From contig NW_003314312.1 in the NCBI RefSeq assembly GCF_000143415.4, positions 253,261 to 317,260 of the forward strand: DNA of 64,000 nt, written 5' to 3'. Under the pieces are notes generated by a model. The model searched no databases. It was given only the letters and a program-made list of their open reading frames with translations, and was not told the DNA's origin. This stretch comes from Selaginella moellendorffii (lineage: Eukaryota; Plantae; Lycopodiophyta). Shown here in pieces: positions 4,484-47,731 of the stretch (position 1 is its first letter; each line of letters begins with the position of its first letter). Position numbers and translations under genes: made by a program.

Positions 4484-6148
4484 ATGGTTCTCTGTCGAGA
4501 AGAAGAAGAAGAAGAAGAAGAAGGGGAAGAGGAGGAGGAGGAGGAGGAGGAGGAAGATTTTGCCGATGAACACACTGGCATTCTCTTCCCCAGAGAGAAA
4601 GAAATCGAAAATGCAACAGCGCCAGTGAATTTGAGTTTGGGATTGGTGGAAAAGGAGAAAATCCAGATTGAAGGAGGAGGAGGAGGAGGAGATGATGCAA
4701 GAAATTCTCTCTTCCAGATTGGAATTCCAGCGATTCGCGCCGAGCTCGCCATGCAATTCCGCCTGGGGTGCCCCATCATGGCCATGAATCTCATCTGGTT
4801 CGCCAAATTCCTAGCCACCACGCTCTTCCTGGGCCGGCTGGGCGGCGTGGAGCTCGCGGGAGGCGCCCTAGCTCTCACCTTCGCCAATGTCACCGGCTAC
4901 TCGATCCTCCTCGGCCTCGCCACTGGAATGGAGCCGATTTGCAGCCAGGCATTCGGCGCCGGGCGGATGGATCTCATGGCCTCAGCGCTCCAAAATGCGA
5001 TCCTCATGTTGCTCCTGGCGTGCATTCCAATCGCCCTCGCCTGGCTCTACAGCGTTGAGAGATTCTTGATCTTCTTGGGCCAAGATCCATCCCTGGCCCG
5101 CGCCTCAGCAAGATTCTTGAAATTTCTCCTCCCGGATCTGTTCCTCCAGGCCGTGATCACTCCCCTGCGGATCTTCCTGCGCTGCCAGAGCGACACACTG
5201 CCAATGACCATCGCCTTCACTGCCGGGATTCTCCTCCACATTGGCCTCGGATTCCTGCTCGCCATGGACCTGCGCGGCGCTGGGATTGCTCTGGCGATGG
5301 GCATTGGCGATCTTTTCACGCTCGCGCTGCTTTTAAGTCTCGTCCTCGCCAAGAGCAGAGCCTCTTCTTCCAAGAACCCTAAAATCGAGAACACGAAGAA
5401 CACGAGGAGGAAGAGATGGAAGCCACTGATCAAACTGGCACTGCCCTCGTGCGCCATGGTCTGTCTTGAGTGGTGGAGCTACGAGGCCATCGTTCTTCTT
5501 GCCGGGCTGCTCCAGGATCCAGAAATCTCCGTCCCAGCTGCCGCGATCGTGCTGAATTTCGACGCAATCCTCTACGCGCTCCAGATCACGCTCGCCTCCT
5601 GCACCGCCACCCGAATCGGCCACGAGCTGGGCGCGAATTCGCCCTCCTCTGCCCGGACCGCGGCAATCGCATCGCTGCTCGCAAGCCTGGCAATGGGATC
5701 GGCGACCTTCGCCTCTCTGGCGGCGTTGCGATCGCTGTGGGGGCGGCTCTTCACGGCCGATCCAGCGATTGTGCGCAGCGTAAGGCGATCGATGCCGGTG
5801 GCGGGTGCGATCGAGCTCGCCAATTTCCCGCTGCTGGTGCTGTGCGGGATCTTGCGTGGGAGCGCGAGGCCAGCGGCGGGCGCGGTGGCGAGCCTGGGAT
5901 CGTTCTACCTCATTGGGCTGCCGTGTGGAGTGGCGCTGGGATTTGGGGCGGGGCTGGGCCTGGTGGGGCTGTGGCTGGGATTGCTAGCGGCGGTGGTGGC
6001 GTGTGTGGCGCTCACGGGGATGGTTGTTCTTGGCACGGACTGGAAGGAGATGGCCATGGCTTCCCAGCTGCAAATCCGATCTTGGGACACTCCTAGCGAA
6101 GTGTGGCATTCTAACGATCCTGATGGAAAAGAAATGGATGAAATTTAA
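4484..6148 (+). CDS. MATE/DTX efflux transporter, intronless clade
   Basis: 554-aa ORF with LGRLGGVELAGG, GMEPICSQAFGA, CLEWWSYE, TRIGHELGAN and FYLIGLP motifs, multiple TM segments and an N-terminal poly-Glu tract. Confidence 0.95.
   Translation: MVLCREEEEEEEEGEEEEEEEEEEDFADEHTGILFPREKEIENATAPVNLSLGLVEKEKIQIEGGGGGGDDARNSLFQIGIPAIRAELAMQFRLGCPIMAMNLIWFAKFLATTLFLGRLGGVELAGGALALTFANVTGYSILLGLATGMEPICSQAFGAGRMDLMASALQNAILMLLLACIPIALAWLYSVERFLIFLGQDPSLARASARFLKFLLPDLFLQAVITPLRIFLRCQSDTLPMTIAFTAGILLHIGLGFLLAMDLRGAGIALAMGIGDLFTLALLLSLVLAKSRASSSKNPKIENTKNTRRKRWKPLIKLALPSCAMVCLEWWSYEAIVLLAGLLQDPEISVPAAAIVLNFDAILYALQITLASCTATRIGHELGANSPSSARTAAIASLLASLAMGSATFASLAALRSLWGRLFTADPAIVRSVRRSMPVAGAIELANFPLLVLCGILRGSARPAAGAVASLGSFYLIGLPCGVALGFGAGLGLVGLWLGLLAAVVACVALTGMVVLGTDWKEMAMASQLQIRSWDTPSEVWHSNDPDGKEMDEI
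4499..4556 (+). repeat. (GAA)n/(GAG)n coding microsatellite (poly-Glu)
   Basis: Directly visible in the sequence. Confidence 0.9.
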
Positions 6149-6242
6149 ATCCTGGAATATTTTATATTCTAAGCTTATTCGCTATGATTAAATTGAATTT
6201 TACCGCCTTTTTGCTACTTACCTTTACCATCACCACTATAAT

Positions 6243-6347
6243 NNNNNNNNNNNNNNNNNNNNNNNNNNNNNNNNNNNNNNNNNNNNNNNNNNNNNNNNNN
6301 NNNNNNNNNNNNNNNNNNNNNNNNNNNNNNNNNNNNNNNNNNNNNNN
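6243..6347. other. Assembly gap (N run)
   Basis: N bases. Confidence 1.
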
Positions 6348-7845
6348 AATCTTTGTGGAGTTTGCAGCCACCTAACAAGGAAGTCCACTCCACCTCGTCA
6401 GGGATAAAGGGCATATTCCAGACTAGATCTTGGGCATCTCGCAAATGCCCGGCTCTACTTAACAAATCCACCATGCAACCATAGTGCTCCTTGAGAGGCC
6501 TCAGCCCGTGATCCCCAGCCATCGATCTAAAGCAGTCCCAGCCGTCCGATACCATGCCGCCGTGGCTGCATCCCAGCAGCACGCAGCACAGGGAGATCTC
6601 GTTGGGCCGGATGCCGTCCAGTACCATCGTACGGAACACATCCAACGCTCCCTGGAAGCGCCCGGCCCTGGCGTACGCTCCAACCAGGCACGTCCACGCC
6701 ACCACGTTCCGTACGCCCATGCCGGCAAAGAAGCGCTGGGCGTCTTCCAGATTCCCGGCCAGCGCATATGCCCCTAGCATCGAGGCCTCGGATGCCGTGT
6801 CGTGATACGGCATCTCGCTGAAGATCCTCCGGCATTCATAGATATTCCTACCGTACGCGTGGGCTGTGAGCAGTGCCGTCCAGGAGAGGATGTCGCGCTC
6901 GGGCATGAGCTGGAAGAGGCGCGCGGTTTTCCGCGCGTCCCCAAGCCGGGAATATCCGCCTAGCATGGTGTTCCACGTGACGAGATTCCTGGCCGGCATC
7001 GCGTGGAAATAACGATTGGCCTCGTCAGCGCTGCTGGCAAAGCACACATCCAGTAAGATCGTCCACGTCACCACGTCGTACAGTGGCATAGCACGGAACA
7101 CCGCCATGGCGTCCTTGAGCCGATGGTGTCCGTACTGTGAATATGCCCCTAGGAGAGTGCTCCATGTGATGAGATTCCTCTCTGGCGTGGCGTGAAAGAG
7201 CGCTATCGCCGAGTTTAAATCGCCGGATCTCATGGAAGAAGAGAGTGCCGCGTTCCAGGCCACCACGCTCCACTGTGGCATTCGATCAAACACAAGCCTG
7301 GCTCGAGCAAAATTTCCTTCTTGGGTATTTGCCGAGAGGAGGATGATCCACGACACAATGTCTCGCTCTGGAATTCGATCGAAGAGATCTTCCAGCTCGC
7401 GGATCCGGCCAAACTGGTCGTAGGCCGCGAGCATCGTGTTCCAGGAGATGACGCTGGGGAATCGAATGCCGTCGAAAATAGACTCCGCGAGATCCAAATC
7501 ACCCGCCCTGGCCGCCGCCGCCACTGCCGCGGTGGAGGAAACCACATCCAATTGGGGCATCCTGGCCAGGATCGAGAGCGCACGAGAGAGATCTCTGCTG
7601 CTGGCGAGCCACGAGAGGAGGATTTGGCGCCAGGAGAAGGGATTCCTGGCGGGCATGGAGTGAAAGAGGGCGAGCGCATCGCGGATGCTGGAGCAGGCGC
7701 CATACATCTGGATGAGGAGATTGGAGAGAAAGATGCCGTCGGTGGACATGAATCGTGATTGCAGCACCTGGGAGTGGACATTGCGAGCATCGGCAATGTG
7801 GCGCACGGATCTGATCAGCCGGACGCACTCATCCACACACCGCAT
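6348..7845 (-). CDS. PLS-class PPR protein with E domain, 3' end lost in the gap
   Basis: Repeated MP.RN/DxxSW motifs, HYGCMVDLLSRAG and MPFIPDEVEWTSLLGGC. The ORF runs into the Ns. Confidence 0.9.
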
Positions 7846-19042: not shown

Positions 19043-22000
19043 TTATTTCTTAGCAAGGTAGTAGAGCTCTACATAGTCAAGCGCGGGCCTATTCCATGAC
19101 CAATCTTGCTCCATTACCTTCTGGCACAACGAATGAAACCAATCTCGCGCGTCATACCAAGCGGACAATGCCCTGTGGAGAAAAATCATCAAAGCCAATT
19201 CACCTCTTCGAATTTTTCTTGCTTGCACGTACCTGTTCAATGCATAGTCCACTCCTGCTGCGTCCGTGCCTTCGAAGCTAAAGCCATTTGGTTCCAGCCC
19301 TTGCGACTGTGCTCGATCTTTGTCATGGTCGACATCAAACACCGTGTCGTTCAATCCTGGCAAAGAATATCGAAACGCTTCTTCTGGAGAGATCGCGATT
19401 CATACCTCCGGTCTTTCGAACAACGGGAATGGCACCGTATCGCATTGCCGTTAGTTGAGTCAAGCCGCAAGGCTCAAAGATGGATGGAACTAAGATGAAG
19501 TCTGCACCGGCATATATCTGCAAAACGTCCAGTTTAGCTACTCGGAGCTTTGATCAGATTGCGCCTTACCAAGTGAGATAATGGTTCATCGTATGTGAGA
19601 CACAACCGTGCCATGTCGTTGTGAGAGTTCTTAAGCTGATGCGAGAGATTCACAAAGTCGTTTTGTACTCGAGGATCCGGAGCAGATCCCAGAAGGACCA
19701 CCTACGAGAAAAACGATATTCATATATCACGGCTGGAATCAACAAACCTGTCCACCGCGCTCCAGAGTTCGCCATATCGCATGCTTGATAAGGTGAATTC
19801 CTTTTTGCGCTGTTAGCCGGGTGATGATGCCGACTAAAGGTTTATCCACTTGCTGCAAACCAAGCCTGTGCTGGAGCTCACTTTTAGCAGCTCTTTTGCC
19901 TTCCACAACTTGCTCTGCTGTGTAAGAAACCTGTAAAGTAGTGTTAAACACGCAGCTCAAACCGTCACTTGAAAAGAAAATCATACGGGAATGTAAGGAT
20001 CGTCAAACGGGTCCCAAATATCCAAGTCGATTCCGTTCCTGATGCCATGAAACTTTCCACGATGAGGGGCAATTGCTGGACTCCCAGAAACTTCTTGTGC
20101 ATAGCTATGTGAGACCTGCAAATTTGTTACGTTCATTCAAAGGCTTTTATGAACTCAGTAAGCTTACCGTGGTTGCCATGTTTGCATTTGCCATTGCCTT
20201 TCCCACCTGGGCAATTCCAAACTCTAAATTATGTATGGTAAACACAATTCGCGCGTTGGACAAAGCATAGTGCTTGTAGCTTTCTTGAAACAGCCAGGCT
20301 ACCGGCGCAGTCGACCAATCGTGACAATGAATAACATCCTGGGAAGCAGAGCTTATAAAGATTATAAAAAAAGAACGGCTTAGAAACTTACAGGACGTCT
20401 TCCACTTCGCAAAAGAAACTCCAGTGCTGCATTGCAGAAAAAACCAAAGCGATGTCCATCATCTCTGCGACCATATATACAGCCAGCCCAAAAGAAGCTG
20501 CAAAAAGAAAATACTACGTGAGTGGAACGTCTAAAGCTGTAATACTAAGCATACCCGTTCTGCGGTTCAATGAAGTGTACGTTTAGGCCTTCTACTTTCC
20601 CATTCCAAACGCGAATGGTGGTTCCTCCCCAGCCAAACGACTCTTTCTCTTGAAGTTCCTCGACCTGCCATTTGTTACGTGGTTAGATCCGACAGATATA
20701 CTACTCGCAACAAAACCGTTGTTTACGTGATTGTATTTCAGGCAGTCATACTTCGGAAGGATAATCTCCACGTTATGGCCCAGTTCTTGTACAGCACGTG
20801 AAAGACTCGTGACAACATCACCTAGACCACCCACCTGTAAAAGATGGCTCCTTAGGACCATCCCGAGAACAGGCATGAGGTAAGACAAATTGTTAACGGG
20901 ACAAGAGAAATACCTTTGCAATAGGAGCCATTTCGACGGAAATATGAACAATGCTCATAGGTGGCTCCTTGCCAATCCCGCCATGAACTGGGATGTGATA
21001 GTCAAAACCACCGCGATTGTCATAAGTTCCTCCATTGTCATCCCCTCTTTCAGAAAACACGCAGTCCATTATGTAAGCATCGACTGGGACTTCAACTGCA
21101 CAGAACAACGAATTAGATATACACGATAATAGAGAAGATGAGAGACTATACCAGTTGCCTTGAGGTGGGTAGTGCTTGGAACCTCTTTCATTCTTACCGG
21201 TGGGAAAGGGCTTAGTTGATGTGTCCAGCGGTTGAAAGAATGCCTCAACCATACCTCAGGCTTCCCGCTTAGAACAGTGTTCTGTGGATTATAAAGCACT
21301 GAAACAGGTTCTCCGGCGTTCACTTCCATTGGATCCGTGTAATAAACGTGAGACTGCGACTGCAAAAATGTTTGTTTCGTCTTTTGTTTCATCTCCTCTT
21401 TCTTCTGTGCTTTGTACAGTTTCTACATAACACACACAAGTTATAAAAGTTATGGAACAAACATACAGCAATACCAACCTTTTTACGTGCAGCCTCTTCT
21501 CTTTCCTGCCGCTGCTTTCGGATCTCAGAATACACCTGCTCTTCAACATCTGCCCAATACAACTCCTCAGCAACGGGTTCGGGAACAGCCATGTGGAAAT
21601 CCTGGTAGTCATTGTTGTCATAAGTTGATGCTTTCTCCGGTGGCCCGTCTGCAAACACCCAATTGAGCATGAACGCTGCCTTGGGAACAGAAACTGCAAA
21701 GAAAAAGAAAGAAAACTTCGTCAATCGTCGATGTAAAAATAATTACTAGACTCGCACCTTCAACTGAACACCAGTCTCCGCTCCTCGACGAAGAGGGCAC
21801 AAGCTTTTCGACCACAGAGACAGCGTCTTGCCAATTGTTGTAGCCTCCGTGTATCCAGAGTTCTGTGCTTCGGGCAAGTGATCGAGAGGAACGATTGTAG
21901 AAGAGCTTCACTGTCTCCCCTGCTTTGAAACTCGTAGGCTCTGCGTCCCAAAGTCCCGGCACACTGGGCAATGCTTTTTGTAATACCATCCTGGCTCGTT

Positions 22001-23539
22001 CTCTCCGTTCAGCAACGATCCTTTTGGCCTCGTCTCTATCCGCTTCCTCCGCAGCTCGTTGCTCTGCCAGCTTACGAGCCTCTGCGGCAGCTCGGTCTTT
22101 TTCTGCTTGTTCTTGCGCAAGCCTTTCAGCTTCTTTCCTCTTCTCCAGCACCAAGAAGTTCTCAAACTCGCGTTGATCCATGCTGCCGTCGTCCACGAGA
22201 ACGAAGAAGTCCTTTGTGTCGTTGTTCTCGTAGACATTTCCGTTGAAGAACACGAAGTCCATTCGATATGCTTCTTTGGGAACGTCCACTTTACAGGCCC
22301 ACCAATCTCCACCAAGTTCACTTTTTTCCAACTTTAATGTGAATGGTTGCCATCGCCAGCCATTAAACGACCCCATAATCTGCACACTGTCCTCGCTTGC
22401 TAGCACCGTTATGCTCCGGTTGAAGTAGATTTCGACCTCAGCACCAGCCTCAACTTTCTGCGGGTAGTAAAATATTTTGCTCATCGTAAAAGCACTGGCA
22501 TCAGCTAGTTTGGCTATCTCCCGCTTCCTGGCTGCTTCTTTCGCAATCCTTTCCCTCTCCTTGGCTAGAGCGAGCTCAATTTCCCTTTTCTTAGCCTCCT
22601 GTTCGAGCTTCTTTTTTTTCTCTGCCTGTTGTTTGGCTAGAATCTGTTCCAGCTCCCATCGTCTAGCAGCAGTGGCTTCTTGGTCTGCTCTTTTCCTACT
22701 CTCCGCCTCAGCTATCTCCTCCTCTGTTCTCCTTCTTTTCTCTGTTTCCTTTTTGATCTCCTTGATCTTCAACGCATAGTCGCTTGCATTAGCCTCCGTG
22801 ACATCGTCCTTGTCTTTCACCTCCGAAACTTTGACAGTAGAGTTATCACCACCAGAGTCGTCCTCCTGCCGATCAGCAGCTTCCGTTTTTCCTTTCAGCC
22901 GACCCGAACCAAACCTTTCAACCTCTTCTTCTATCCTCTGCTTTGCAACCACGTAATCAACTTCCTGGTGCGCCGAGATGGAGGCCGATTGAGAGCGCAT
23001 CTTCTCTAGAACCTGGTCCTGCTCTCCATTCTCTGCCACAGTTGGTTCTACCACTACTTTCTCCGTCCCAGCCGTCTCTGTTTCCTCGTCATTGCTGGTT
23101 TCTCGACCAGCCTTGGCCGTCTTTACCTCGAAACTAGTAGCTTCAGAGACATCGTCCGGTTTGGACGTCTTCTTCTCTTTGAGCTTTTGCTGGAAGCCTT
23201 TCTGTCGTTCACCTGTGCCAAAAGAAAAAAAAAAAAACAGAAGAAAGAACATCACAATGTAGTAAAGTAATGTATCGTACCTGCGCATACAATTGTCTTG
23301 AAATTCCTGCGCGACGATCTTCTTTCCAGTCGACACTGGAAGAATACCAGACAATATGTCAAGCAGTAGATCGATCAGGAGCATTTCTATCGAAATTCAT
23401 CCCAAAACTAGCTAGAATTGTCCAGATCCATGACACTCACCCAGATTAAGAAGCGCTCATTGCTAGATCCAAGCCCTCCCGCCGATGAAACCTTCCACGC
23501 CGCGGCCGACGCCGCCACGAGCGACGCCGCGGTTGCCAT
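19043..23539 (-). CDS. SS3: Soluble starch synthase III (three CBM53-type starch-binding repeats + GT5)
   Basis: Three N-terminal CBM repeats (FNGWRW, GGYNNW, HSFNRW), [40 protein letters not shown] and [11 protein letters not shown]. Start inferred at 23539 ([11 protein letters not shown]...). Confidence 0.95.
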
Positions 23540-24544: not shown

Positions 24545-25230
24545 AATGTTTGTATCCATCTAGTGCGTGGAAAACGTGCTCAAGATCGGTATTAGAATAA
24601 ATAGAGCTGGCATTTGCTAAGGAAATTAGACGTCCCATCTGAGTCGAGCCGCTTAACTTAGCATTCGCACCTATGGGTTTCATTAGTAGTGCTGCTTATG
24701 CTGGCAGTAAGTATAGGAAGGAGCTAAGCACTATTTCATACTAAGCTTCACCTTTATCTTCATTTCATTTGGTTACACTGTTTTGGTGTGCTGGGGAAAA
24801 GTCTCCACTTTCTACCATCTATTCAGGTGCTATAGTGGATGCCATTCAGGTCCAGAGCGTTGAGGGCCTGCGGTCTTTCCATGGGACAAATAGCTGCAAT
24901 GGATGTTCTCCCATCGATCCGCCTCATAAACTTGGAGGAACTTGCTATCCAACTTTGTTGAGTTTTTGCTGACACTCTATTGTTCTAGCAGATCAATCTT
25001 CGCTAAAGATATCTGGATACGCTGGATGGAGCTCGGCGACCAATCCTTGGCTACATCTATATAAAGAATACTGCCGACGGCAAGACCACAACTTACGGAC
25101 CATTTGGCTATACAGAAACGGAAGAGTATTTTTGCTCAAAGGACGGCTTTTGGGCACTAGTACATATATGAGAGGCAATGGAGTCTGCTTCCAGGACCCA
25201 TTACCATCACCACCACTTTCTCTTCCGTGC
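24545..25230 (+). pseudogene. Degenerate jacalin-lectin gene copy
   Basis: Matches 25820-26640 with multiple deletions (GEKSPL~STIYSGAIVDAIQV). Confidence 0.85.
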
Positions 25231-25935: not shown

Positions 25936-26833
25936 ATGTGCACCTTATGGGTTTCCTTCATAGTGCTGCTTATGCTGACAGTGAGTATAGGAAGCAGCAT
26001 TGACATACTAAGCTTCAACTTTTATTTTCTTGAGATTCAATTCTTTGGTTGCACTGTTTTATAGGTGTGGTGTGCTGGGGAAAAGTCTCCACTCTATGGT
26101 GGGACTAGATGGGCAGAAAAGTTTGATGATGGTCCATCTTCAGGCATTCTGAGCCTTACCATCTATTCAGCTGCTGTAGTGGATGCCATTCAGGTGCAGA
26201 CCGTTGAGGGCCTGCGGCCTTTCCATGGGACAAATACCTGCAAGGGATGTTCTCCCATCCATCCGCCTCATAAACTTGGGGGAACTCGCTATAAGGTACA
26301 CACAACTTCGTTGATTTTTTGCTAATGTCACTCTATTGTTGAAACAGATCAATCTTCGCTACCCAGATGAGTATATATACAAGATCTCTGGATACGCTGG
26401 ATGGAGCTCGGTGAGCAAAACTTGGGGTCTCAGCCAATTTTACATCTACATAAAGAATAGTGTCCACGGCAAGACTACAACTTATGGACCATTTGGCTAT
26501 ACAGCAGCACGAGAGAATTTTAGCTCAAAGGAGGGCAAGATTGTGGGCTTTTGGGGCTACGCCTCTACTACTACATATATGAGAGGCATTGGCGTCTACA
26601 TCCAGGACCCATTACCACCACCATCTCCTCCGCCACCATCACCACCACCATCTCCTCCGCCACCATCACCACCGCCTCCATCAGCAAGCTGCATTCCCTA
26701 TGAGCTAAATTGTGTTTGTTGCTACGAGACTCCGTCAGCCAAGTGTTGCCCAGAAGATTACAAATGCGAGAGTTACAAAGGTGAATGGAAATATCTCTCG
26801 AAATGCGTGCAAAAATACTCCTTTGATGCCTGA
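25936..26833 (+). CDS. Secreted chimeric lectin: signal peptide + one jacalin domain + SPPPP extensin-like linker + 8-Cys knottin-like domain (exons 25936-25980, 26065-26295, 26348-26833)
   Basis: MCTLWVSFIVLLMLTVWCA signal; jacalin motifs SPLYGG, FDDG, VVDAIQV, EYIYKISG, TYGPFG, KIVGFWG, RGIGVY; (SPPPP)n; C-x6-C-x-CC-x7-CC-x5-C-x12-C. Confidence 0.88.
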
Positions 26834-27029
26834 AATTATCAGCTGATTTAAAATGATATAAATTTAATAGAAAAACACTATTAAAACACATGTAAGTATG
26901 TTTGATCCAATTAAGCGTTTCGCTTCCATTTTGAGCGAGGCGCTTGAGGCAACGGCTACCTGTCGCGCTGGAGCAGGTAAGCACGTCAATCGAATTCCAC
27001 CAGGCACGCAGATAGTGGCAATCTTTCGG

Positions 27030-27860
27030 ATATTCTATCGCCACGTGGACATCGTTGGCTGCTGCTGATCGCTCTCTCGGCGCTGGCCCTGCGCCCCGGT
27101 AGCTCGATCCGTGTGGACGATCCTCCGGCGATGGATCCCAAGATTGCAGTGTTCGCGGTGGGGAGCTCCTGGAGTGGCGAGGCGGCGTTTGGATGCATGA
27201 GGACGAGAGTAGGGTATTGCGGCGGGAGCAAGCAGAGCCCCGAGTATCGAAATATCGGCGATCACGCGGAATCCGTGGAGGTATGCCTTGCGCTTTTTCC
27301 TTCCCGATGGATCGATTGACCTAGGGGCAATGTAGGCTGCTGCTGATCGAAATCTTTGTCCAGATCGGCTCTCGTGCGCTACGAGCAGCTGCTAGACGCG
27401 TTCCGACGCAAGTTTTTGGACAAGGACCTGATGTGGGCGAGCAATACAGGTATGTCATCTGTGAAGTTTGCCCTTTTCCTTCGTGATGTCATTCTTTTTT
27501 CACTCTCCATCATTTTTACGGCGACAGTGAGCAAAGAAAGAGAGCAAGCAAAGAGACCATACACAATGGTTGCTACAGAGATCGAGCCTCTCGAAACGTT
27601 CTATCCCGCGGAGCTAGAACACCAGGTACTAGAAGCTGGAATCATCTCTTGGGACGATCTTTGCTCCATTTGTTGACGACCACTTCTCTTGCAGCTCTTT
27701 GGCGAGCTCGCGGAAGAGGACTTTGTGCGATCGAGTGCCGCGGCGCGATTCAATGGCTACGCGGCTGGAATGTGTCCGGCTCCAGTGATCAAGGAACTGG
27801 ATAGCAAAGTTAGCCAGTTCATGCAGCACAGGCAAAAACTAAGCTTGCTCTTCCAGTGAA
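27030..27860 (+). pseudogene. MSRA5 pseudogene
   Basis: Start region deleted, GSFW changed to GSSW, and several internal deletions relative to the intact copy at 36363-37282. Confidence 0.85.
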
Positions 27861-27934
27861 GGAGCTAGCTTTTCGCGATTGTCGCTGTGGGAGACAATCT
27901 CGATCTCCCAGTGACAATGGCGGACATATCTGCC

Positions 27935-28440
27935 GTACACTGTTTTGGTGTGCTGGGGAAAAGTCTCCACTTTCTACCATCTATTCAGGTGCTATAGTGG
28001 ATGCCATTCAGGTCCAGAGCGTTGAGGGCCTGCGGTCTTTCCACGGGACAAATAGCTGCAATGGATGTTCTCCCATCGATCCGCCTCATAAACTTGGAGG
28101 AACTTGCTATCCAACTTTGTTGAGTTTTTGCTGATGTCACTCTATTGTTCCAGCAGATCAATCTTCGCTAAAGATATCTGGATACGCTGGATGGAGCTCG
28201 GCGACCAATCTTTGGCTACATCTATATAAAGAATACTGTCCACGGCAAGACCACAACTTACGGACCATTTGGCTATACAGCAACGGAAGAGGCGACTGCA
28301 GCGGGATTCAATGGCTACGCGGCTGGAATGTGTCCGGCTCCAGTGACCAAGAAACTGGACAACAAAGTTCGCCAGTTCATGCGGCACAGGCAAAAACTAA
28401 TCTTGCTCTTCCAGTGAAGCAGCTGGCTTTTCGCGATCGT
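27935..28440 (+). pseudogene. Second degenerate jacalin fragment fused to an MSRA5 3' fragment
   Basis: Near-identical to 24775-25390, with the same jacalin deletions. Confidence 0.85.
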
Positions 28441-28801
28441 CGCGAGACAATGTCATTCCAAAGGCTGCTACAGGGTTTATTGAGAACAAGTATGGAATTC
28501 GTCAGCCTATCATTTTTAATCCCTTCAACATGGACTGGGAGATAATCTCGATCTCCCAGTGACAATGGTAGAGAAACGAATTCATTCTCCACGGAAGAAG
28601 AAGAGAGAGCAAATGTAAATTCTTTGCTTGTGTTTATCCAGATCAATTATATCTGCCATACAATTCTAAATAAAATGTACAACAAGCAAAGGACTGAAGA
28701 GTAAAAAGGAAGTCACGGTTTCATTCATTCATATACCGTTTAGATGGTATACAAGAAGCATGAGACCAAGGAATGAATGAGACTTAAATCCCTCGGTCTC
28801 A

Positions 28802-29560
28802 TGCTTCTTGGGCGTGACACATGACCACGTAAATAGAATATGAATAAATATGAAATAAGTTGCCCAGATGATTGTCTAACTGTTTTGTAAATAAGAGAAT
28901 ATTTCCAGAATCTTTTAGTCAACCATAGCTCCCATCTGTTGACTTGGCTCCCCATATATGCGGATTTGTATCCATCCAGTGCGTGGAAAACTCTGTCTCG
29001 TGCTTCTTGGGGGGTGGTACATGACCACGTAAATAGAATATGAATAAATATGAAATAAGTAGATGATTGTCCAACAAATAAGAGAATATTCCACAATATT
29101 TTAGTCAACCTTAATAACTTAATCTGTTGACTTGGCTCCCCATATATGCGGATTTGTATCCATCTAGTGCGTGGAAAACTCTGTCTCGTGCTTCTTGGGG
29201 GGTGGTACATGACCACGTAAATAGAATATGAATAAATATGAAATAAGTAGATGATTGTCCAACAAATAAGAGAATATTCCACAATATTTTAGTCAACCTT
29301 AATAACTTAATCTGTTGACTTGGCTCCCCATATATGCGGATCTTGTATCCATCTAGTGCGTGGAAAACTCTGTCTCATGCTTCTTGGGGGGTGGTCCATG
29401 ACCACGTAAATAGAATATGAATAAATATGAAATAAGTAGATGATTGTCTAAGAAATAAGAGAATATTCCACAATATTTTAGTCAACCTTAATAAGTTAAT
29501 CTGTTGACTTGGCTCTCCATATATGCGGATCTTGTATCCATCTGGTGCGTGCAAAACGTG
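28802..29560 (+). repeat. Tandem repeat, 4 units of ~188-199 bp, upstream of the multi-jacalin gene
   Basis: Units start at about 28802, 29001, 29189 and 29378 (tgcttcttgggg...tgaccacgtaaatagaatatgaataaatatgaaataag...agtcaacc...ttgacttgg...tagtgcgtggaaaac). Confidence 0.92.
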
Positions 29561-29650
29561 TTCAAGATCGAAGTTGAGCCCGGGAGTAGAATAAATAGAG
29601 CTGGCACTTGCAAAGGAAAACATCCAATTTGTGCAGCAAGTCGAGCGAGC

Positions 29651-32318
29651 ATGTACACCTTATGGGTTTCCTTCATAGTGCTGCTTATGCTGACAGTGAG
29701 TATAGGAAGGAGCACTGACATACTAAGCTTCAACTTTTATTTTCTTGAGCTTCATTTTGGTTGCCCTGTTTTGTAGGTGTGGTGTGCTGGGGAAAAGTCT
29801 CCACTTTATGGTGGGACTAGATCGGCAGAAAAGTTTGATGATGGTCCATCTTCAGGCATTCTGAGTCTGACCATCTATTCAGGTAATGTAGTGGATGCCA
29901 TTCAGGTGCAGACCGTTGAGGGCCTGCGGCCTTTCCACGGGAGAAATACCTGCAAGGGATGTTCTCCCATCAATCCACCTCATAAACTTGGAGGACCTCG
30001 CTATCAGGTACACACAACTTCGTTGAGTTTATGTTAATGTCACCCTATTGTTCAAATAGATCAATCTTCGCTACCCAGATGAGTATATATACAAGATATC
30101 TGGACACTCTGGATGGTACGGTCTCAGCCAATTTTACATCTACACAAGGAAAGGTGTCCACGGCAATACCACAACTTATGGACCATTTGGCAAAATAGCA
30201 GGGGAAAAGAAATTTTCCTCAAAGGAGGGCAAGATTGTGGGCTTTTGGGGCTACGCCTCTACTAGTACATCTATGAGAGGCATTGGAGTCTATTTCCAGG
30301 ACCCACCACCAGTAAGTATACCAAAGAGAACTATGTTTTATTTTGAGGTTCATTTCATTTGGTTGCTAACTGTTGCAGGCCACGAAATCTCCACTCTATG
30401 GTGGGAATAGATCGGCAGAAAAGTTTGATGATGGTCCATCTTCAGGCATTCTCAGTCTTACCATCTATTCAGGTGCTATAGTGGATGCCATTCAGGTCCG
30501 GACCGTTGAGGGCCTTCGGCCTTTCCACGGGACAAATAGCTGCAAGGGATGTTCTCCCATCAATCCGCCTCATAAACTTGGAGGAACTCGCTATCAGGTA
30601 CACACAACTTCGTTGAGTTTTTGCTAATGTCACTCTATTGTTCGAACAGATCAATTTTCGCTACCCATATGAGTATATATACAAGATATCTGGATCTGCT
30701 GGATGTTACGGTGGATGGGACGGTCTCAGCCAATTTTACATCTACACAAGGAACAGTGTCCATGGCAATACCACAACTTATGGACCATTTGGCAATAGAG
30801 CAGGAGGGAAAGAGAATTTTCGCTCAAAGGAGGGCAAGATTGTGGGCTTTTGGGGCTATGCCTCTACTAGTACATATATGAGAGGCATTGGAGTCTACTT
30901 CCAGGACCCACCACCACCAGTAAGTCTACCAAAGAGAGTTATATTTTCATTATTTTGAGGTTCATTTCATTTGGTTGCTGACTGTTGCAGGCCACGAAAT
31001 CTCCACTCTATGGTGGGACTAGATCGGCAGAAAAGTTTGATGATGGTCCATCTTCAGGCATTCTGAGTCTTACCATCTATTCAGCTGCTGTAGTGGATGC
31101 CATTCAGGTCCAGACCGTTGAGGGCCTGCGGCCTTTCCACGGGACAAAAAGCTGCAGGGGATGTTCTCCCATCAATCCGCCTCACAAACTTGGAGGAACT
31201 CGCTATCAGGTACACACAACTTCGTTGAGTTTTTGCTAATGTCACTCTATTGTTCGAACAGATCAATCTTCGCTACCCATATGAGTATATATACAAGATA
31301 TCCGGATATGCTGGATGGAGCTCGGTGGCCAAAGTTTGGGGTCTCAGCCAATTTTACATCTATACAAGGAATAGTATCCACGGCAATACCACAACTTATG
31401 GACCATTTGGCAATAGAGCAGGAGGGAAAGAGAATTTTTACTCAAAGGAGGGCAAGATTGTGGGCTTTTGGGGCTACGCCTCTACTAGTACAGATGTGAG
31501 AGGCATTGGAGTCTACATCCAAAACCCACCACCAGTAAGTATACCAAAGAGTTTCATTATTCTCTCTAGGTTCATTTCATTTGGTTGCTGACTGTTGCAG
31601 GCCACGAAATCTCCACTCTATGGTGGGAGGGAATGGGCAATGGAGTTTGATGATGGTCCATCTTCAGGCATTCTGAGTCTTACAATTTATTCAGGTGCTG
31701 TAGTGGATGCCATTCAGGTGCAGACCGTTGAGGGCCTGCGGCCTTTCCATGGGACAAATACCTGCAAGGGATGTTCTCCCATCCATCCGCCTCATAAACT
31801 TGGGGGAACTCGCTATAAGGTACACACAACTTCGTTGACTTTTTGCTAATGTCACTCTATTGTTCGAACAGATCAATCTTCGCTACCCAGATGAGTACAT
31901 ATACAAGATATCTGGATACGCTGGATGGAGCTCGTTGAGCAATATTTGGGGTCTCAGCCAATTTTACATCTACATAAAGAATAGTGTCCACGGCAAGATC
32001 ACAACTTACGGACCATTTGGCTATACACCAGGGAAAGAGAATTTTCGCTCAAAGGAGGGCAAGATTGTGGGCTTTTGGGGCTACGCCTCTGCTAGTACAT
32101 ATATGAGAGGCATTGGAGTCTACATCCAAGACCCATTACCATCACCACGGCCACCGTCACCTCCACCAACAACCTGCATTCCCTATCAGCAAGCTTGTGT
32201 TTGTTGTAACGAGACTCCATCAGCCAAGTGTTGCCCAGAAGGATACGAATGCCAGACCTTCAAGGGTGAATGGAAATATCTCTCGAACTGCCAGCCAAAA
32301 TACGCTCTCTCCCTTTGA
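29651..32318 (+). CDS. Secreted tetra-jacalin chimeric lectin with Pro linker and C-terminal 8-Cys domain (9 exons, ~724 aa)
   Basis: Exons 29651-29695, 29777-30007, 30060-30311, 30379-30597, 30650-30919, 30991-31209, 31262-31534, 31601-31819 and 31872-32318. All lengths are multiples of 3, all introns are GT-AG, and no in-frame stops were seen. Confidence 0.88.
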
Positions 32319-32738
32319 TTTCTGGAATTAAGAGTTTCAATTCGATAATAAAGGAAATCACCTATGATAAACTGTTTATAAGGGTTTCGCTTCTAGTCCA
32401 CTTTTGAGAATGCGCAACTATGAGCAACGAGGCGGACATAGTAGATTTCCGAGAACGAAAGCGGTCCAAGCATCACGATCAAATGGTGCCTCTGGATCAT
32501 GGCTTCAGAAGCCATGACGAGCTCCTCGCCGCTGTAGCAATCGAATTCCACCAGGCACGCGCATAGTCTTTAAGCTCGGCAATCTATAGTTTCTCAGGTG
32601 GAGGATCCGTGTTTCTTGCTGCTTGCGAGTGTTTCGGGAAGCTTAGCTTGAAAATCGAGAGGAGGTGGGAGAAGCTGACGTGTCGGATATTCTATCGCCA
32701 CGTGGACATACCTTTGATCAAATTCTAAAAGCGCAGCG

Positions 32739-33599
32739 ATGTCTCCATGGCTGCTGCTGATCGCTCTCTCGGCGCTGGCGCTGCGCCCCGGCAGCTCGAT
32801 CCGTGTGGACGATCCTCCGGCGATGGATCCCAAGATTGCAGTGTTCGCAGTGGGGAGCTTCTGGAGTGGCGAGGCGGCGTTTGGATGCATCCCCGGAGTG
32901 GCGAGGAGGAGAGTAGGGTCTTGCGGCGGGAGCAAGCAGAGCCCCGAGTATCGAAATATCGGCGATCACGCGGAATCCGGGAGGTATGCCTTGCGCTTTT
33001 TCCTTCCCGATGGATCGAGGCAATGTAGGCTGCTGCTGATCGAAATCTTTGTCCAGATCGGCTCTCGTGCGCTACGAGCAGCTGCTAGACGCGTTCCGAC
33101 GCAAGTTTTTGGACAAGGACCTGATGTGGGCGAGCAATACAGGTATGTCATCTGTGAAGTTTGCCCTTTTCCTTCGTGATTCTTTCGATCTCGTTCTTTT
33201 TTCACTCGCCAGGTCCATCATTTTTACACAGAACGAGGACGAGGCTTTTCTGGCAACAGTGAGCAAAGAAAGAGAGCAAGCAAAGCGACCATACACGATG
33301 GTTGCTACAGAGATCGAGCCTCTCGAAACGTTCTATCCCGCGGAGCTAGAACACCAGGTACTTGAAGCTGGAATCATCTCTAGGGACGAGCTTTGCTCCA
33401 TTTGTTCTTGCAGAAGTTTGAGCTGCGAAGACGACCACTTCTCTTACAGCTCTTTGGTGAGCTCGCGGAAGAGGACTTCGTGCGATCGAGCGCCGCGGCG
33501 CGATTCAATGGAATGTGTCCGGCTCCAGTGACCAAGGAACTGGATAGCAAAGTTAGCCAGTTCATGCGGCACAGGCAAAACCTAAGCTTGCTCTTCTAG
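32739..33599 (+). pseudogene. MSRA5 pseudogene (inverted duplicate of the intact copy)
   Basis: 1-nt loss at the end of exon 1 (tccgggag vs tccgtggag), loss of the EYDP and WAAHD codons, and loss of YAAG in the last exon. Confidence 0.85.
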
Positions 33600-34484
33600 T
33601 GAAGGAGCTAGCTTTTCGCGATTGTTGCTGTGGGAGATAATCTCGTGACAATGGCGGACAGACAATGATTCATTCTATGCTCGTGTTTATCCAGATTAAC
33701 TATATCTGCCGTACAGTTTTAACTAAAATGTAGTAACCACATTTTTGTTATGGACCATGGCCTAAAATGACTACCTTAAACAAAAACCTCAAAACTCAGA
33801 TTTAAGGTAAACACCCCTGCAGTATTTGCACAACCCCTCAATCTTTGAGATTGCTACTTGGCAAGGAGATGATGTGGCAAGGAGTTCAGCTAGCAGGGGT
33901 TATTAAAAAAGAGGGTTTTCGAGGTCAAGGACCATAGTAACCCCTCCCTTTACACTAGATATATAGGCTATCCCTCTTCCTCAAATAACATCATGCAATC
34001 TTTGTGAATCTGACCCTCCTTGCCACAAGTAAAGCATATTTGTTGGTATGTTTGCCTACCTTCACCCTCATCCTCACAGCTGTGTTTATATAATCCATCC
34101 CTTTAGCAATACTTATCACTACTGCTATGGGATTTCTTTTTAGACTAGCTTCTATTTTGGTTATAACTCTCCCTTTTGTTGGCCCCATAAATGTGTTCCT
34201 CACCCTTTAAGCAGGCAAAAGAAATTGACGATAGAAAGCTTGTTTAGACAATCTCTTAGCTTTATCTATATCAATGGTAGACATGGTGTAAAGTTGTTTA
34301 GTATAATTATAGGGCTGTTAAGGACATTTAACTCCATGTATCTCAATATTTGGTATATTTTTTTATGGGTTCTTTTTCCTTTATATTTAAACTTTAATAA
34401 ACCATCTCTCAAGTTGTTCTTTTGATTGCTTACAAAGATTTTTAATGATGAATAGTCCATGAGCTAGCACCACTACCTCATTTG

Positions 34485-36210
34485 AGGTTATATTCTGGTT
34501 TCTAGCACAGACTTCTCAAGCTAATTATTTATCTTCCTCTTGATGAAGTTGCAAATTATTTGAAAGAATTTTTCAAGCCTAAAAGGCTTTTAATGTGATG
34601 CTCATAAATCTTTTGAGATTGTGAGCTAAGATGGGCTAGCATGATAAACTCATGGCTAATAAGCTTATGATATGTTTATAGATCTTTTGAGATTATAAGC
34701 TAAGAATTGTGTAAATTGGGTTAGTATGATAAATTCATAACTAAAAAGCTTGTGATATTATACTCATAGATCTTTTGATATTGTGAGCTAAAAATTGTGT
34801 AAGTTGGCTAGCATAATAAATTCATGACTAAAAAGTTTGTGATGCAATGCTCATAAATCTTTTAAAATTATGAGTTGAGAATTGTGTAAGTTGGGCTAGT
34901 ATAATAAAAATCATGGTTAAAGAACTTGTGATGTGGCACTCATAGATCTTTTAGGATTATAAATTTAGAATTGAGAGAGTTAGATTGGCATAACAAAATT
35001 ATGGCTAGAAAACTTGATGTTCACAAATCTTTTAAGATTATGAGCTGAAAATTGAAAGTGTTGGGCTGGCATGACAAAGTCATGCCCAAAAAACTTGATG
35101 TTCACAAATTTTTGGAGATTATGAATTGTGATATGTGAGTTGATTTGTGTAAACAACCAAAGAGAATAATTTAAGATATGATCCATTGAAGTTGGATTTG
35201 AATATGGCTAAGTGACCTTTTAGAAAGTCTAAACTTCAGAAGTTTACATTTGGTATTAGAATGATTTCAAATTCATGGTTGGTTAAGGAAATCACACCAA
35301 ATGATCTATCGGGGTTTAAATATAAAGGAACAATGCACCCTTTTTTTCTAATTAATTAAGGGTTTTGAGATATTTAGGGTTAAGTGTCATTGGTTTGAAT
35401 AGTACTATACTACCTCTTGGGAAATCTAAAATTCAAGAGCTTACAATTTAGTCTTGAGTAGATAATTATGAATGTGGAAGGATTGTGATGCTATGATTAA
35501 ACAAATTGCATATAGCTAACTATGATATTTAAGTGTACGCAACACTTCATATATGCATAGCTAACTATGAAGTTTAAGTATGCACAACACTCCATATGTG
35601 CATGTGTGATATTAGTGCTAAGAAGGATAATTTGTGCAGTTTTCACTGAAGTATACAAAGAAGAACAAATACCTTTTATTAAAGATTGAGAACCTATTAG
35701 ATAGATTGGAAAAAACAAAATACTTCTTGAGTAAAGAATTGTGAATGTGGAAGGATTGTGATGCTATGATTAAACAAATTGCATATAATTAATTATGATG
35801 TTTAAGTGTGCACAATACTCTATATATGTATATGTGATACTTATGCTAAGAAGGATAATTTGTGTAATTTCTACTGAAGTATACAGAGAAGAACAAATAC
35901 CTTTTATTAAGGATTGAGAATTTGTTTAAAATACTTTTCAAGGATTTACTTAAGGTCAAGATACTACTAGATTAAGGTAGCAAAGAAAGATATTAAAAAA
36001 ATAACCTATTAGACAAAGTAACTATTTAGCCATGAATTTATCATGCTAGTGCACCTTACATAAGTTTCAGATCTATGAACATTAAATCACAAACTTTCTA
36101 GACTTAAAAAATTCTCCTCTCACTGCCTCAAACAATTTATAATTTCTTCAAGAGGAAAGCAAATGGTTAGGATGAAAAATAAGCCTCTAACCTCCACCAA
36201 AATATAGACT
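34485..36210. mobile_element. Non-autonomous DNA-transposon-like element with subterminal tandem and inverted repeats
   Basis: About 7 copies of a ~80-bp unit at 34600-35130, an inverted unit copy at ~36025-36100, 34485-34560 inverted at ~36135-36210, and an internal direct duplication 35465-35690/35740-35920. Confidence 0.5.
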
Positions 36211-36362
36211 ATGGTTATGGATTACATAATTGGATGCAGTTGCTACATTTTAGGGCTATCTGTTAAAACTGTACGGCAGACATAGTTAATCATCTGGAAT
36301 GAATCATTGCCATTGTCACAGGGAGATCGAGATTGTCTCCCACAACAACAATCTCAAAAAGC

Positions 36363-37282
36363 TCACTGGAAGAGCAAGCTTAGTTTTTGCCTGTGCCGCA
36401 TGAACTGGCTAACTTTGCTATCCAGTTCCTTGGTCACTGGAGCCGGACACATTCCAGCTGCGTAGCCATTGAATCGCGCCGCGGCGCTCGATCGCACGAA
36501 GTCCTCTTCCGCGAGCTCGCCAAAGAGCTGCAAGAGAAGTGGTCGTCTTCGCAGCTCAAACTTCTGCAAGAACAAATGGAGCAAAGATCGTCCCTAGAGA
36601 TGATTCCAGCTTCAAGTACCTGGTGTTCTAGCTCCGCGGGATAGAACGTTTCGAGAGGCTCGATCTCTGTAGCAACCATCGTGTATGGTCGCTTTGCTTG
36701 CTCTCTTTCTTTGCTCACTGTTGCCAGAAAAGCCTCGTCCTCGTTCTGTGTAAAAATGATGGACCTGGCGAGTGAAAAAAGAATGAGATCGAAAGAATCA
36801 CGAAGGAAAAGGGCAAACTTCACAGATAACACACCTGTATTGCTCGCCCACATCAGGTCCTTGTCCAAAAACTTGCGTCGGATCGTGAGCCGCCCAGAAG
36901 GCGTCTAGCAGCTGCTCGTAGCGCACGCGAGCCGGATCATACTCGATCTGGACAAAGATTTCGATCAGCAGCAGCCTACATTGCCCCTAGGTCAATCGAT
37001 CCATCGGGAAGGAAAAAGCGCAAGGCATACCTCCACGGATTCCGCGTGATCGCCGATATTTCGATACTCGGGGCTCTGCTTGCTCCCGCCGCAATACCCT
37101 ACTCTCGTCCTCACCACTCCGGGGATGCATCCAAACGCCGCCTCGCCACTCCAGAAGCTCCCCACCGCGAACACTGCGATCTTGGGATCCATCGCCGGAG
37201 GATCGTCCACACGGATCGAGCTGCCGGGGCGCAGGGCCAGCGCCAGCGCCGAGAGAGCGATCAGCAGCAGCCATTGAGACAT
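36363..37282 (-). CDS. MSRA5: Peptide methionine sulfoxide reductase A5-type (signal peptide, Ser at the canonical catalytic Cys), 4 exons
   Basis: [17 protein letters not shown] signal; [71 protein letters not shown]. Reading frame intact. Confidence 0.9.
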
Positions 37283-37699: not shown

Positions 37700-38100
37700 C
37701 TCTTAATTCCAGAAATCAAATGGATATAGAGTATTTTGGCATGCATTTCGAGAGATCTTTCCATTCCTCTTTATAACTCTCCCATTCCTAATCTTCTAGG
37801 CAACACTTGGCTGATGGAGTCTCGTGACAACAAACACACAACTTATAGAGAATAGGCGGTGGTAGGCGGAAGAGAAGATGGTGGTGATGGTAATGGGTCC
37901 TGGAAGTAGACTCCAATGCCTCTCACACCTGTACTAGTGGAGGCGTAGCCAAAAGCTCACAATCTTGCCCTCTTTTGAGCACTGTTGCTGTATACCCAAA
38001 CGGTCCACGTAAGTTGTGGTCTTGCGGTGGACACTATGCTTTGGGTAGATGTAGAATTGGCTGAGACCCCAAAGATTGGTCGCCGAGCTCCATCCAGCGG
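37700..38100 (-). pseudogene. Decayed jacalin/knottin lectin 3' half (right arm of inverted duplication)
   Basis: Reverse complement matches 31920-32340 (YGPFG, GIGVYFQDP, ETPSAKC) with deletions. Confidence 0.8.
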
Positions 38101-45437: not shown

Positions 45438-45490
45438 CTACTAGGTTTGGGTAAGTTACATAGAACGCCAATGGGTTGAGGCTGGCGGGC

Positions 45491-47731
45491 ATGGGCTTCG
45501 TCACCCCGAGAAGACCGCGCTTGTTAAGTAAGATGGGAGCTCGAGGTGTTGCTACTGTACGCGAGGCAGTGGCTCAGGAAGAGGAGGTAGTGGCAGCAGG
45601 GGACGTCAGGATACCGTTTGGACAGCACCAGGGACAGCCTCTCAAGTCTCTTCCGGAAGGCTACTTGAAGGTCCTTGCGCGCATGGCGAGATCAAAGTGG
45701 GGGTTGCTAGCGGAGGAGGTGCTCAGCGAACGGGGAAGCGTGGATGGGTGCAGGCAGAAGGCGAACGCAATCTTAGAGCAGGAAGCCTTTGCTCGCCTTC
45801 TCAGAAATGCCAGCAGTTTAGAGGCGGTGGAGTTGGTCCGTGCCAGGATCGACGAAAGCGGCGTTCGTCACAACGCCGAGCTGCTCAACGTTTTGATTCG
45901 AGTCTACGGCAAGTATGGATGCCTGGTGGAGGCAAAGCAGGTTCTAGACGGCATGCGCTATCAGAATGGAGAGTCGTGGAACACCATGATCCTCATGTAC
46001 GCTCAGAATGGACGACTGGAGGAGGCCAAGAGGACTTTCGATGCAATGCCAGTTCGAGACGCCGTCTGCTGGATCACGATGCTGAGGGCTTATGCCGCGT
46101 TCGAACTTCCAGGACTCGCCAGGGTAGTGTTTGAAGCCATGCCAATGCACGACTTAGAATCAGCGACAGAGATGATGGAGGTTCTTCTGTCGAAGGAGGA
46201 AAGACATCGAGTGAAGCTGGTCTTTGACGAGATGGTGGAAAAAGATGTCTGCGCTTACAACAGTATGCTTCGTGCATATACCCAGGAAGGGCATTCGAAT
46301 CGGGTGAGAGCCACAGCGGAGAAGATGCCAGAGTGGGACGTGGTGACGGTGAACACCATGCTTCAAGCGTTTGCCAGTGAGGGGTCTCTGGAGAACGCCG
46401 AACGATTGTTTGACGAGTTTCCTGAGCGCAACGAAGAGACCATCAGTATTATGCTGAGAGCATACGCCGCGTCCGGATGCTCTGAAGCAGCCCAGGCAAT
46501 GTTTGATCGGCTTGTACGTCGGAACGAGGAGCTCTGGACATTTCTAGTCATCGCGTACTCCAGAGCCGGGCAAGCAGCGGACGCAAAGTTGGTGTTTGAC
46601 AAAGTTCCTGGCAAGAGCGACCTTTCGTGGGCAGTCCTAACTGAAGAGTACGCCCAGAACTTGCAGCTGGAAGATGCAGAGGCCGTGTTTGACAAGGTTC
46701 CGAAGTGGAGCGTCCGATCGTGGATTGCTATGATATGGGCCTACGCTCAGAGCGGTCACGAGCAAATGGCCCGGATCATTTTTAACAGGTGCTCGACTTA
46801 TGACGCGGGGGTCTGGAACGCATTCATTGCAGGAATGACTGTGCTAGGCCGTGCCAGTGATGCGATTCAACTTCTCAGAGGTATGAATCTGGAAGGTTTC
46901 CCTCCGGATAAGTTTACGTTCCTCAACCTTCTCAATGCTTGCAGTGCTGAGTGCCTGGCCAGGCAAGGTGGTAGTCTTTTCAAGGAGATGGTTGCTGATC
47001 ATGGCATGGCTCCGTGGAAAGATCACTACAGTGCAATGGTCGAGTTGCTGGGCCGGGCCAAGTATTTAAAAATAGGACAAGTTCTCGCCAACAGCATGCC
47101 ATTCGAGCCGGATTATGCAACGTGGAAAGCTCTCTTTCATGCTTGTCGGCACCACCGAGACTTAAAGCTTGGACTGCGAGCTGCAAAGGAGCTTATTCTC
47201 TTGGATAGACACAACGCCCTGCCGTATACTCTGCTAGCAGAATCATATGCAGCAGCTGGCAAGCAGGATAAAGTGGCTGTCATCCAACGCGTGATGGAGA
47301 AAACTGGAATTAAGAGAAACTATGCTGCAAGCTGGATACTTGTCAAGGGCAGGTTCCAAAGCCTCATGATCGGAGATGCTGGACATCCGGAGAACAGCGA
47401 GATTCGTGCTCAGCTCAGGGAGCTGGTTGACAAGATTGAGAAGGAGGGATACAAGCCCGACACAACGCTGGTACTGGATAAGAACATGTCCGAAAAGGAG
47501 AGGGAGGACAGTTTACTTGATCACAGTGAGAAGCTTTCGCTTGCTTTCGGCATGGTCAGCACCAAGCCTCGGTGCCCGCTTCGAATCATCAACAGCTCGA
47601 GAGTATGCTCCGACTGCCACAATGCTCTCAGGTTGGCGTCGCTAGTAACTGGCCGGCTCATCGTTTTAAGGGACGACTCTCGGACTCATCACTTTGAGCG
47701 AGGCAAATGCTCATGCAGGGACATTTGGTAA
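45491..47731 (+). CDS. PLS-E-DYW PPR protein (RNA-editing factor type) with extra N-terminal PFG-x-H-x-G module
   Basis: PLS repeats, E domain and DYW deaminase HSEKL...RVCSDCH...CSCRDIW. Confidence 0.92.
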   Translation: MGFVTPRRPRLLSKMGARGVATVREAVAQEEEVVAAGDVRIPFGQHQGQPLKSLPEGYLKVLARMARSKWGLLAEEVLSERGSVDGCRQKANAILEQEAFARLLRNASSLEAVELVRARIDESGVRHNAELLNVLIRVYGKYGCLVEAKQVLDGMRYQNGESWNTMILMYAQNGRLEEAKRTFDAMPVRDAVCWITMLRAYAAFELPGLARVVFEAMPMHDLESATEMMEVLLSKEERHRVKLVFDEMVEKDVCAYNSMLRAYTQEGHSNRVRATAEKMPEWDVVTVNTMLQAFASEGSLENAERLFDEFPERNEETISIMLRAYAASGCSEAAQAMFDRLVRRNEELWTFLVIAYSRAGQAADAKLVFDKVPGKSDLSWAVLTEEYAQNLQLEDAEAVFDKVPKWSVRSWIAMIWAYAQSGHEQMARIIFNRCSTYDAGVWNAFIAGMTVLGRASDAIQLLRGMNLEGFPPDKFTFLNLLNACSAECLARQGGSLFKEMVADHGMAPWKDHYSAMVELLGRAKYLKIGQVLANSMPFEPDYATWKALFHACRHHRDLKLGLRAAKELILLDRHNALPYTLLAESYAAAGKQDKVAVIQRVMEKTGIKRNYAASWILVKGRFQSLMIGDAGHPENSEIRAQLRELVDKIEKEGYKPDTTLVLDKNMSEKEREDSLLDHSEKLSLAFGMVSTKPRCPLRIINSSRVCSDCHNALRLASLVTGRLIVLRDDSRTHHFERGKCSCRDIW

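Follow-up and report, generated by a model that had tools for sequence, protein, structure and literature searches.

A four-domain jacalin gene on one Selaginella moellendorffii haplotype is probably an internally multiplied member of a secreted lectin family

Results

A four-domain jacalin gene with nine phase-0 exons

The window analysed here comprises 64,000 nucleotides of the Selaginella moellendorffii genome and corresponds to scaffold GL377616.1 of assembly GCA_000143415.2, with which positions 15936-36833 were compared letter for letter and found identical. At its center, on the plus strand, lies a four-domain jacalin gene (29651-32318) that encodes a protein of 724 aa, RefSeq XP_024542717.1, an accession that carries no isoform suffix. 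The gene consists of nine exons and eight introns of 52-81 nt, all of which are GT-AG and in phase 0. Exon 1 (29651-29695, 45 nt) encodes a hydrophobic stretch of 15 aa that resembles a signal peptide as judged from its hydropathy, and is followed by the 81-nt intron 1 (29696-29776, phase 0). Each of the four jacalin repeats is then formed by two exons on the same strand. Repeat 1 (29777-30311) consists of an N-half (exon 2, 29777-30007, 231 nt) and a C-half (exon 3, 30060-30311, 252 nt) separated by a mid-domain intron of 52 nt, and repeat 2 (30379-30919) of exon 4 (N-half, 30379-30597, 219 nt) and exon 5 (C-half, 30650-30919, 270 nt). Repeat 3 (30991-31534) is built from exon 6 (N-half, 30991-31209, 219 nt) and exon 7 (C-half, 31262-31534, 273 nt). 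In repeat 4 (31601-32318, including linker and tail), exon 8 (31601-31819, 219 nt) provides the N-half, while exon 9 (31872-32318, 447 nt) carries the C-half together with a Pro-rich linker and a tail of eight cysteines. All nine exon translations are found exactly and consecutively in XP_024542717.1, and the half-domain, all-phase-0 layout proposed in a first-pass annotation of this DNA thereby agrees with the database record in every exon. The four-domain gene is a real gene that had been annotated before.

The encoded protein starts with the signal-peptide-like N-terminus, continues with four jacalin domains connected by Pro-rich linkers and ends in the 8-Cys tail. The Pfam jacalin profile PF01419 matched it in four stretches with 195.9 bits against a curated cut-off of 22. 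The hydropathy of the protein shows an N-terminal hydrophobic peak of 2.9 and no other segment of membrane length, and the product is thus probably secreted, as far as can be judged from its sequence. The last Pro-rich linker and the 8-Cys tail, which contains two CC pairs, span 32142-32315 and have a counterpart at about 26620-26830 in a neighboring one-domain paralogue. For the tail, a search of Pfam gave a granulin match below threshold only, and a search of the Atlas gave no structural match above a TM score of 0.5.

Predicted gene models from JGI deviate from this structure. The JGI model SELMODRAFT_421303 of the four-domain gene is 16 aa shorter than the RefSeq protein, and in the JGI model EFJ16931.1 an extra in-frame intron at 29843-29890, inside exon 2, drops 16 residues. 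This intron would delete strand β3 and is therefore probably a prediction error. JGI models of 708 and 147 aa were rejected as isoforms, being 'hypothetical' predictions from which core strands are cut out.

The repeat units of ~610 nt each differ from one another by 4-13% in their exons and each unit carries private indels. Since the gene region also contains no N-runs, it is unlikely that the repeats are an assembly artefact, a caveat that had been raised at the outset. Between repeats, protein identity amounts to 84-92% for the N-halves and 76-89% for the C-halves. The introns had been described as near-identical, which applies to the mid-domain introns (88-100% alike) and less so to the linker introns, which are 86-93% alike and contain indels.

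The exon layout follows from an old intron and a duplicated one

To understand the regular exon pattern, we mapped jacalins from the database onto their own genes and compared the intron sites. The mid-domain phase-0 intron sits just before a conserved 'L-x-x-P/D-x-E' stretch, and an intron of the same phase occupies the same site in the four-domain proteins of Cornus (4/4 domains) and Benincasa (4/4), in an Acer protein and in a distant Selaginella jacalin (P0112); every mapped domain of the Cornus, Benincasa and Acer genes is split in this way. Judging from these genes, the mid-domain intron is an ancestral plant jacalin intron. A literature search on the intron phase of jacalins found no paper. 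The gene of Acer protein P0007 contains nine introns, all in phase 0, in which mid-domain and between-domain introns alternate; units one and two of this gene share 96% identity. The complete half-domain layout and recently duplicated units are thus shared with an ordinary angiosperm gene.

The three linker introns of the Selaginella gene resemble intron 1 (z-scores of 5.2-5.9 over shuffled sequences), whereas the mid-domain intron does not (z 0.4), and by this similarity they are copies of intron 1. The duplicated unit would therefore reach from intron 1 through the Pro-rich linker, and its likely source is a one-domain gene resembling the neighbor at 25936-26833. The uniform phase 0 was inherited from the two parental introns. 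A unit duplication of this kind is expected to leave symmetric exons and look-alike introns, which thus provide no evidence of a splicing design. The first-pass annotation had taken the phase-0 half-domain exons for a cassette arrangement, for which the ancestral intron and the duplicated intron 1 are a sufficient explanation.

The gene lies in a block that is present on one haplotype only

In the S. moellendorffii assembly, the sequenced plant is represented by its two haplotypes (PMC3095285). The second haplotype, on scaffold GL377620.1, tracks the window up to position 26880 and resumes at 36182, with a substitution divergence of 1.4-1.9% in the flanks. A block of 9.3 kb (26881-36181) is thus absent from it, and the junction on this haplotype (L001, 10945-10946) shows an overlap of 2 nt. 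In this block lie the four-domain gene, one jacalin fragment and two additional copies of the methionine sulfoxide reductase gene msrA. In total, msrA is found at 27056-27926 and 32748-33660 on the plus strand and at 36309-37273 on the minus strand. The minus-strand copy matches the other haplotype, while the two plus-strand copies each carry several deletions of 6-24 nt; NCBI still predicts products of 200 and 201 aa from them. Divergence of the block msrA copies from the shared copy (2.2-2.9%) and of the repeats from each other exceeds that between the alleles (1.6%), from which the block seems older than the allelic split. These distances would be explained more simply by a loss from the other haplotype.

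Upstream of the four-domain gene, a unit of 188 bp is present in four copies (28792-29557). Its marker sequence occurs once ahead of each allele of the one-domain paralogue, and an amplification of promoter sequence is possible. Inside the block there are furthermore AT-rich arrays, with units of 81-87 bp, and two paired repeats of 110-140 bp (34552-35125 and 35452-35920). Ordinary genes in the neighborhood are a MATE transporter (4484-6148), a PPR gene (6214-7845), a starch-synthase-type gene with CBM53 domains (21618-23384) and a DYW-type PPR gene (45476-47731).

Variation concentrates at the predicted sugar-binding end

The model of the one-domain paralogue (P0001, residues 16-182, pLDDT 86) shows a β-prism I fold, whose nearest structural relative is banana lectin (BanLec) with a Z-score of 20 and an r.m.s.d. 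of 1.6 Å. Profile, fold and intron together assign the four-domain gene to the jacalin family. The loop variants quoted in the first-pass annotation, including GHSGWYG, GSAGCYGGWDG, KIAGEKK / NRAGGKEN / YTPGKEN and SGNVVD / SGAIVD / SAAVVD / SGAVVD, were all found. They correspond to the loops β3-β4, β7-β8 and β9-β10, which are all predicted to lie together at the sugar-binding end, a placement derived from the strand order of the model and the known β-prism topology (PMC6068142) rather than from measured distances.

Across the four repeats and two alleles of the paralogue, 35 of the 60 columns in the six binding-end loops are variable, compared with 17 of 102 elsewhere (p=8e-8), where the p-values are somewhat optimistic as the loop limits were drawn from the model after inspection of the alignment. 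Variation is thus indeed concentrated in a few loops, as had been proposed, while the accompanying description of an almost invariant scaffold is too strong given its 17 variable columns. Replacement and silent changes stand at 36:4 in the binding-end loops and 18:24 elsewhere. A codon model yielded a dN/dS of 1.54 for the binding-face loops versus 0.35 for the remainder (p=7e-9). The loops at the opposite end (0.36) are as constrained as the strands (0.35), and the excess is therefore specific to the binding end. An excess over 1 is not significant: p is 0.075 in the codon model, the loop value falls to 1.0 once the two loops with indels are left out, and the site models M2a versus M1a gave p=0.15 and 0.058. 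The binding end has been released from constraint or diversified.

Two features of these loops deserve mention. The N-half exons (e.g. at about 29940-29995) encode an insertion of ~17 residues with a CxxC motif in the β5-β6 loop at the binding end, which exceeds the length of this loop in the aligned solved relatives and is poorly modelled (pLDDT below 50). Moreover, the β7-β8 loop of repeat 2 (30695-30724) contains an extra cysteine, the only one among the C-halves of repeats 1-3, which may be unpaired or link chains.

A closer inspection of the sugar-binding sites was carried out against 99 homologues. The site-1 aspartate in the β11-β12 loop is present in 76 of them and is an arginine in every repeat here; the second glycine of the site-1 (β1-β2) loop is found in 94/99 and is an alanine in all repeats. 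The RefSeq name 'mannose/glucose-specific' is therefore unsupported. The site-2 aspartate of the β3-β4 loop (67/99 homologues) is retained, while the glycine loop of site 2 (β5-β6) is the one that, in the low-confidence part of the model, appears to carry the long insertion. If sugars are bound, we would thus expect this to occur probably at site 2, as in banana lectin, or at a remodelled site.

Could the gene then be a dispensable duplicate, whose loops are free to vary under relaxed selection and which perhaps no longer binds sugars? Its absence from the other haplotype, a loop dN/dS indistinguishable from 1 and the replaced site-1 residues would fit this explanation. However, a frame of 2.2 kb has stayed intact while neighboring copies decayed, the scaffold is under constraint, the excess is confined to the binding end when opposite-end loops evolve like strands, and every loop indel keeps the frame. 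We therefore regard a dispensable duplicate as unlikely.

Intact copies show signs of exchange, broken neighbors are debris

The one-domain paralogue (25936-26833, plus strand) encodes 253 aa (XP_024542718.1) and has an allele on the other haplotype (XP_024543726.1). Five of the ten differences between these alleles match states present in the repeats, which each difference would do by chance in about 7% of cases (p about 3e-4), although three of the five lie within 12 nt and are not independent. The shared states include an alanine of the β3-β4 loop that is common to repeat 3. A PHI-like test among the intact copies gave p=0.016. Both results are signs of an occasional conversion between intact jacalin copies.

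The first-pass annotation had placed the donors of such exchange among nearby pseudogene fragments. Three broken jacalin copies lie nearby, within 9 kb. The first (psi1, 24672-25213, plus strand) has suffered several deletions, the second (psi2, 27936-28292, plus strand) is 2% from psi1, and the third is an inverted 3' half (psi3, 37729-38099, minus strand) that adjoins the shared msrA copy. If these fragments served as a store of loop sequences for copying into the expressed gene, their proximity would be expected. In addition, psi3 has two bases, close to each other, in common with repeat 3 but with no other repeat, and psi1 agrees with repeats 2 and 3 at a few N-half positions. Yet each fragment diverges by 12-20% from all of the repeats, more than the repeats do among themselves, and a long shared tract is absent. 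Their β7-β8 loop is found in no repeat, they are rich in deletions and accompany msrA pieces, and psi1 and psi3 are also kept on the haplotype that lacks the multi-domain gene. A donor role has hardly any probability in our view; judging from these comparisons, the broken neighbors are debris of duplication and not loop donors.

Constitutive splicing is the most likely mode of expression

As every internal exon is symmetric in phase 0, the reading frame would survive any skip, and the splice sites are near-equal in all repeats. Regulated skipping could thus pair each N-half with C-halves further downstream or drop whole domains, giving rise to a repertoire of lectins. Such hybrids would also alter the binding surface, since the loops that an N-half contributes to the retained site 2 lie beside the most variable C-half loop, β7-β8, which modulates binding in jacalins of the BanLec/AcmJRL type (PMC6068142).

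The layout itself, however, is that of ordinary jacalin genes, and merely 21 of the 128 in-frame exon sets leave the domains whole, with 10 domain types among them. To make any such isoform, two or more exons measuring 219-273 nt would have to be skipped together, a jump of 640-680 nt in total that passes nearer splice sites of the same sequence across introns of 52-71 nt. In S. moellendorffii, two-exon skips account for 59 of 11,030 events and the mean skipped exon measures about 80 nt (PMC5310277); across eukaryotes, exon skipping is favored by short exons with long introns (PMC6142364). N- and C-half exons alternate and all are present in the annotated product, so an array of interchangeable exons is not found.

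Consistently, RefSeq lists a single product of the gene, and its cluster consists of two models that both belong to the same locus. For the database searches, exons were queried one at a time and the whole-domain and whole-protein steps were taken via the database records P0001 and P0231. Hybrid or shortened forms were not found in these protein-database searches, which covered 53-817 aa; this blank depends entirely on the RefSeq annotation, as not even the full-length form is represented there by a transcript-assembly entry. A search for transcript fragments across an N/C junction returned only a JGI model of the one-domain paralogue. Among the rows listed in file 6 of PMC5310277, neither the gene ids nor any of twelve splice coordinates had a match; we attach little weight to this result, as correspondence of the coordinates was assumed.

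Taken together, constitutive splicing that yields a single product of 724 aa is most likely for this gene, as far as its sequence and annotation indicate. That regulated two-exon skipping yields hybrid and shortened lectins, in which the retained site-2 half is paired with differing β7-β8 loops, is in our estimate very unlikely. If true, it would add a small recognition repertoire built by splicing, in a land plant, to the germline exchange between copies, and a demonstration of regulated combinatorial splicing would give the locus far greater importance than the gene has as it stands. We know of no plant that builds recognition repertoires by combinatorial splicing.

Discussion

Our analysis suggests, with good probability, that the locus contains an ordinary tandem-domain jacalin-related lectin of the secreted-jacalin family of Selaginella, which was duplicated locally, multiplied internally and diversified in the germline. 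A one-domain gene composed of a signal exon, a jacalin domain with a phase-0 intron, a Pro-rich linker and a Cys tail would have been duplicated locally together with its msrA neighbor. Within one copy, the unit of intron 1, N-half exon, intron and C-half up to the Pro-rich linker would then have been multiplied to four. Diversity would have arisen in the germline: selection on the binding-face loops was relaxed or diversifying, intact copies now and then exchanged short tracts, and haplotypes came to differ in whether they carry the gene. The product may act outside the cell as a multivalent binder, its four domains being unlike one another at the binding end, and by analogy to its family it likely serves the recognition of glycans from microbes, herbivores or cell walls.

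Repeated exons, variable loops on a conserved scaffold and broken copies nearby are hallmarks of Dscam1-type arrays and pseudogene-donor systems, and repeated exons with variable loops and broken copies nearby are found at this locus as well. Unlike in Dscam1, constitutive exons do not flank a set of alternative ones and at most 21 whole-domain forms could be made; unlike in donor-based conversion systems, donor-derived tracts are absent. The locus thus represents no new kind of system, and its interest is for specialists in lectins and lycophytes. It offers a compact case of a plant recognition protein that gains valency and variety: an internal duplication reuses existing phase-0 introns, the binding end changes faster, copies exchange sequence and only a single haplotype carries the gene.

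Multi-domain jacalins were common in our database searches. Tandem β-prism I domains are shared with those of Parkia (PDB 1ZGR, a three-domain seed lectin), Cornus (XP_059666850.1), Benincasa (XP_038898646.1) and Acer (TXG52223.1), in comparison to which the Selaginella protein is set apart by its signal-peptide-like N-terminus, Pro-rich linkers and 8-Cys tail as well as by the CxxC insertion in β5-β6 and the change of the site-1 aspartate to arginine. Jacalins with a signal peptide are rare in angiosperms, with three in Arabidopsis, one in rice and none in soybean and cucumber (PMC5485960), and the jacalins of Selaginella are known to have expanded (PMC6362431). The best structural matches, BanLec and pineapple AcmJRL, are two-site mannose binders with which the site-2 aspartate is shared, whereas site 1 is non-canonical here and the site-2 glycine loop differs by its long, low-confidence insertion.

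The closest likeness is found within the species. XP_024542718.1, XP_024543726.1 and EFJ22014.1/XP_024537545.1 share the signal-peptide-like start, the mid-domain phase-0 intron, the site-1 arginine, the Pro-rich linker and the Cys tail; these jacalin-Pro-Cys proteins contain one domain each, compared with four in the present gene, which exists on one haplotype only. A distant secreted jacalin of Selaginella forms a head-to-head pair with a gene of the papain family (L003, 491-1472 and 3001-8298), and the last intron of 4.2 kb that RefSeq assigns to this jacalin looks doubtful.
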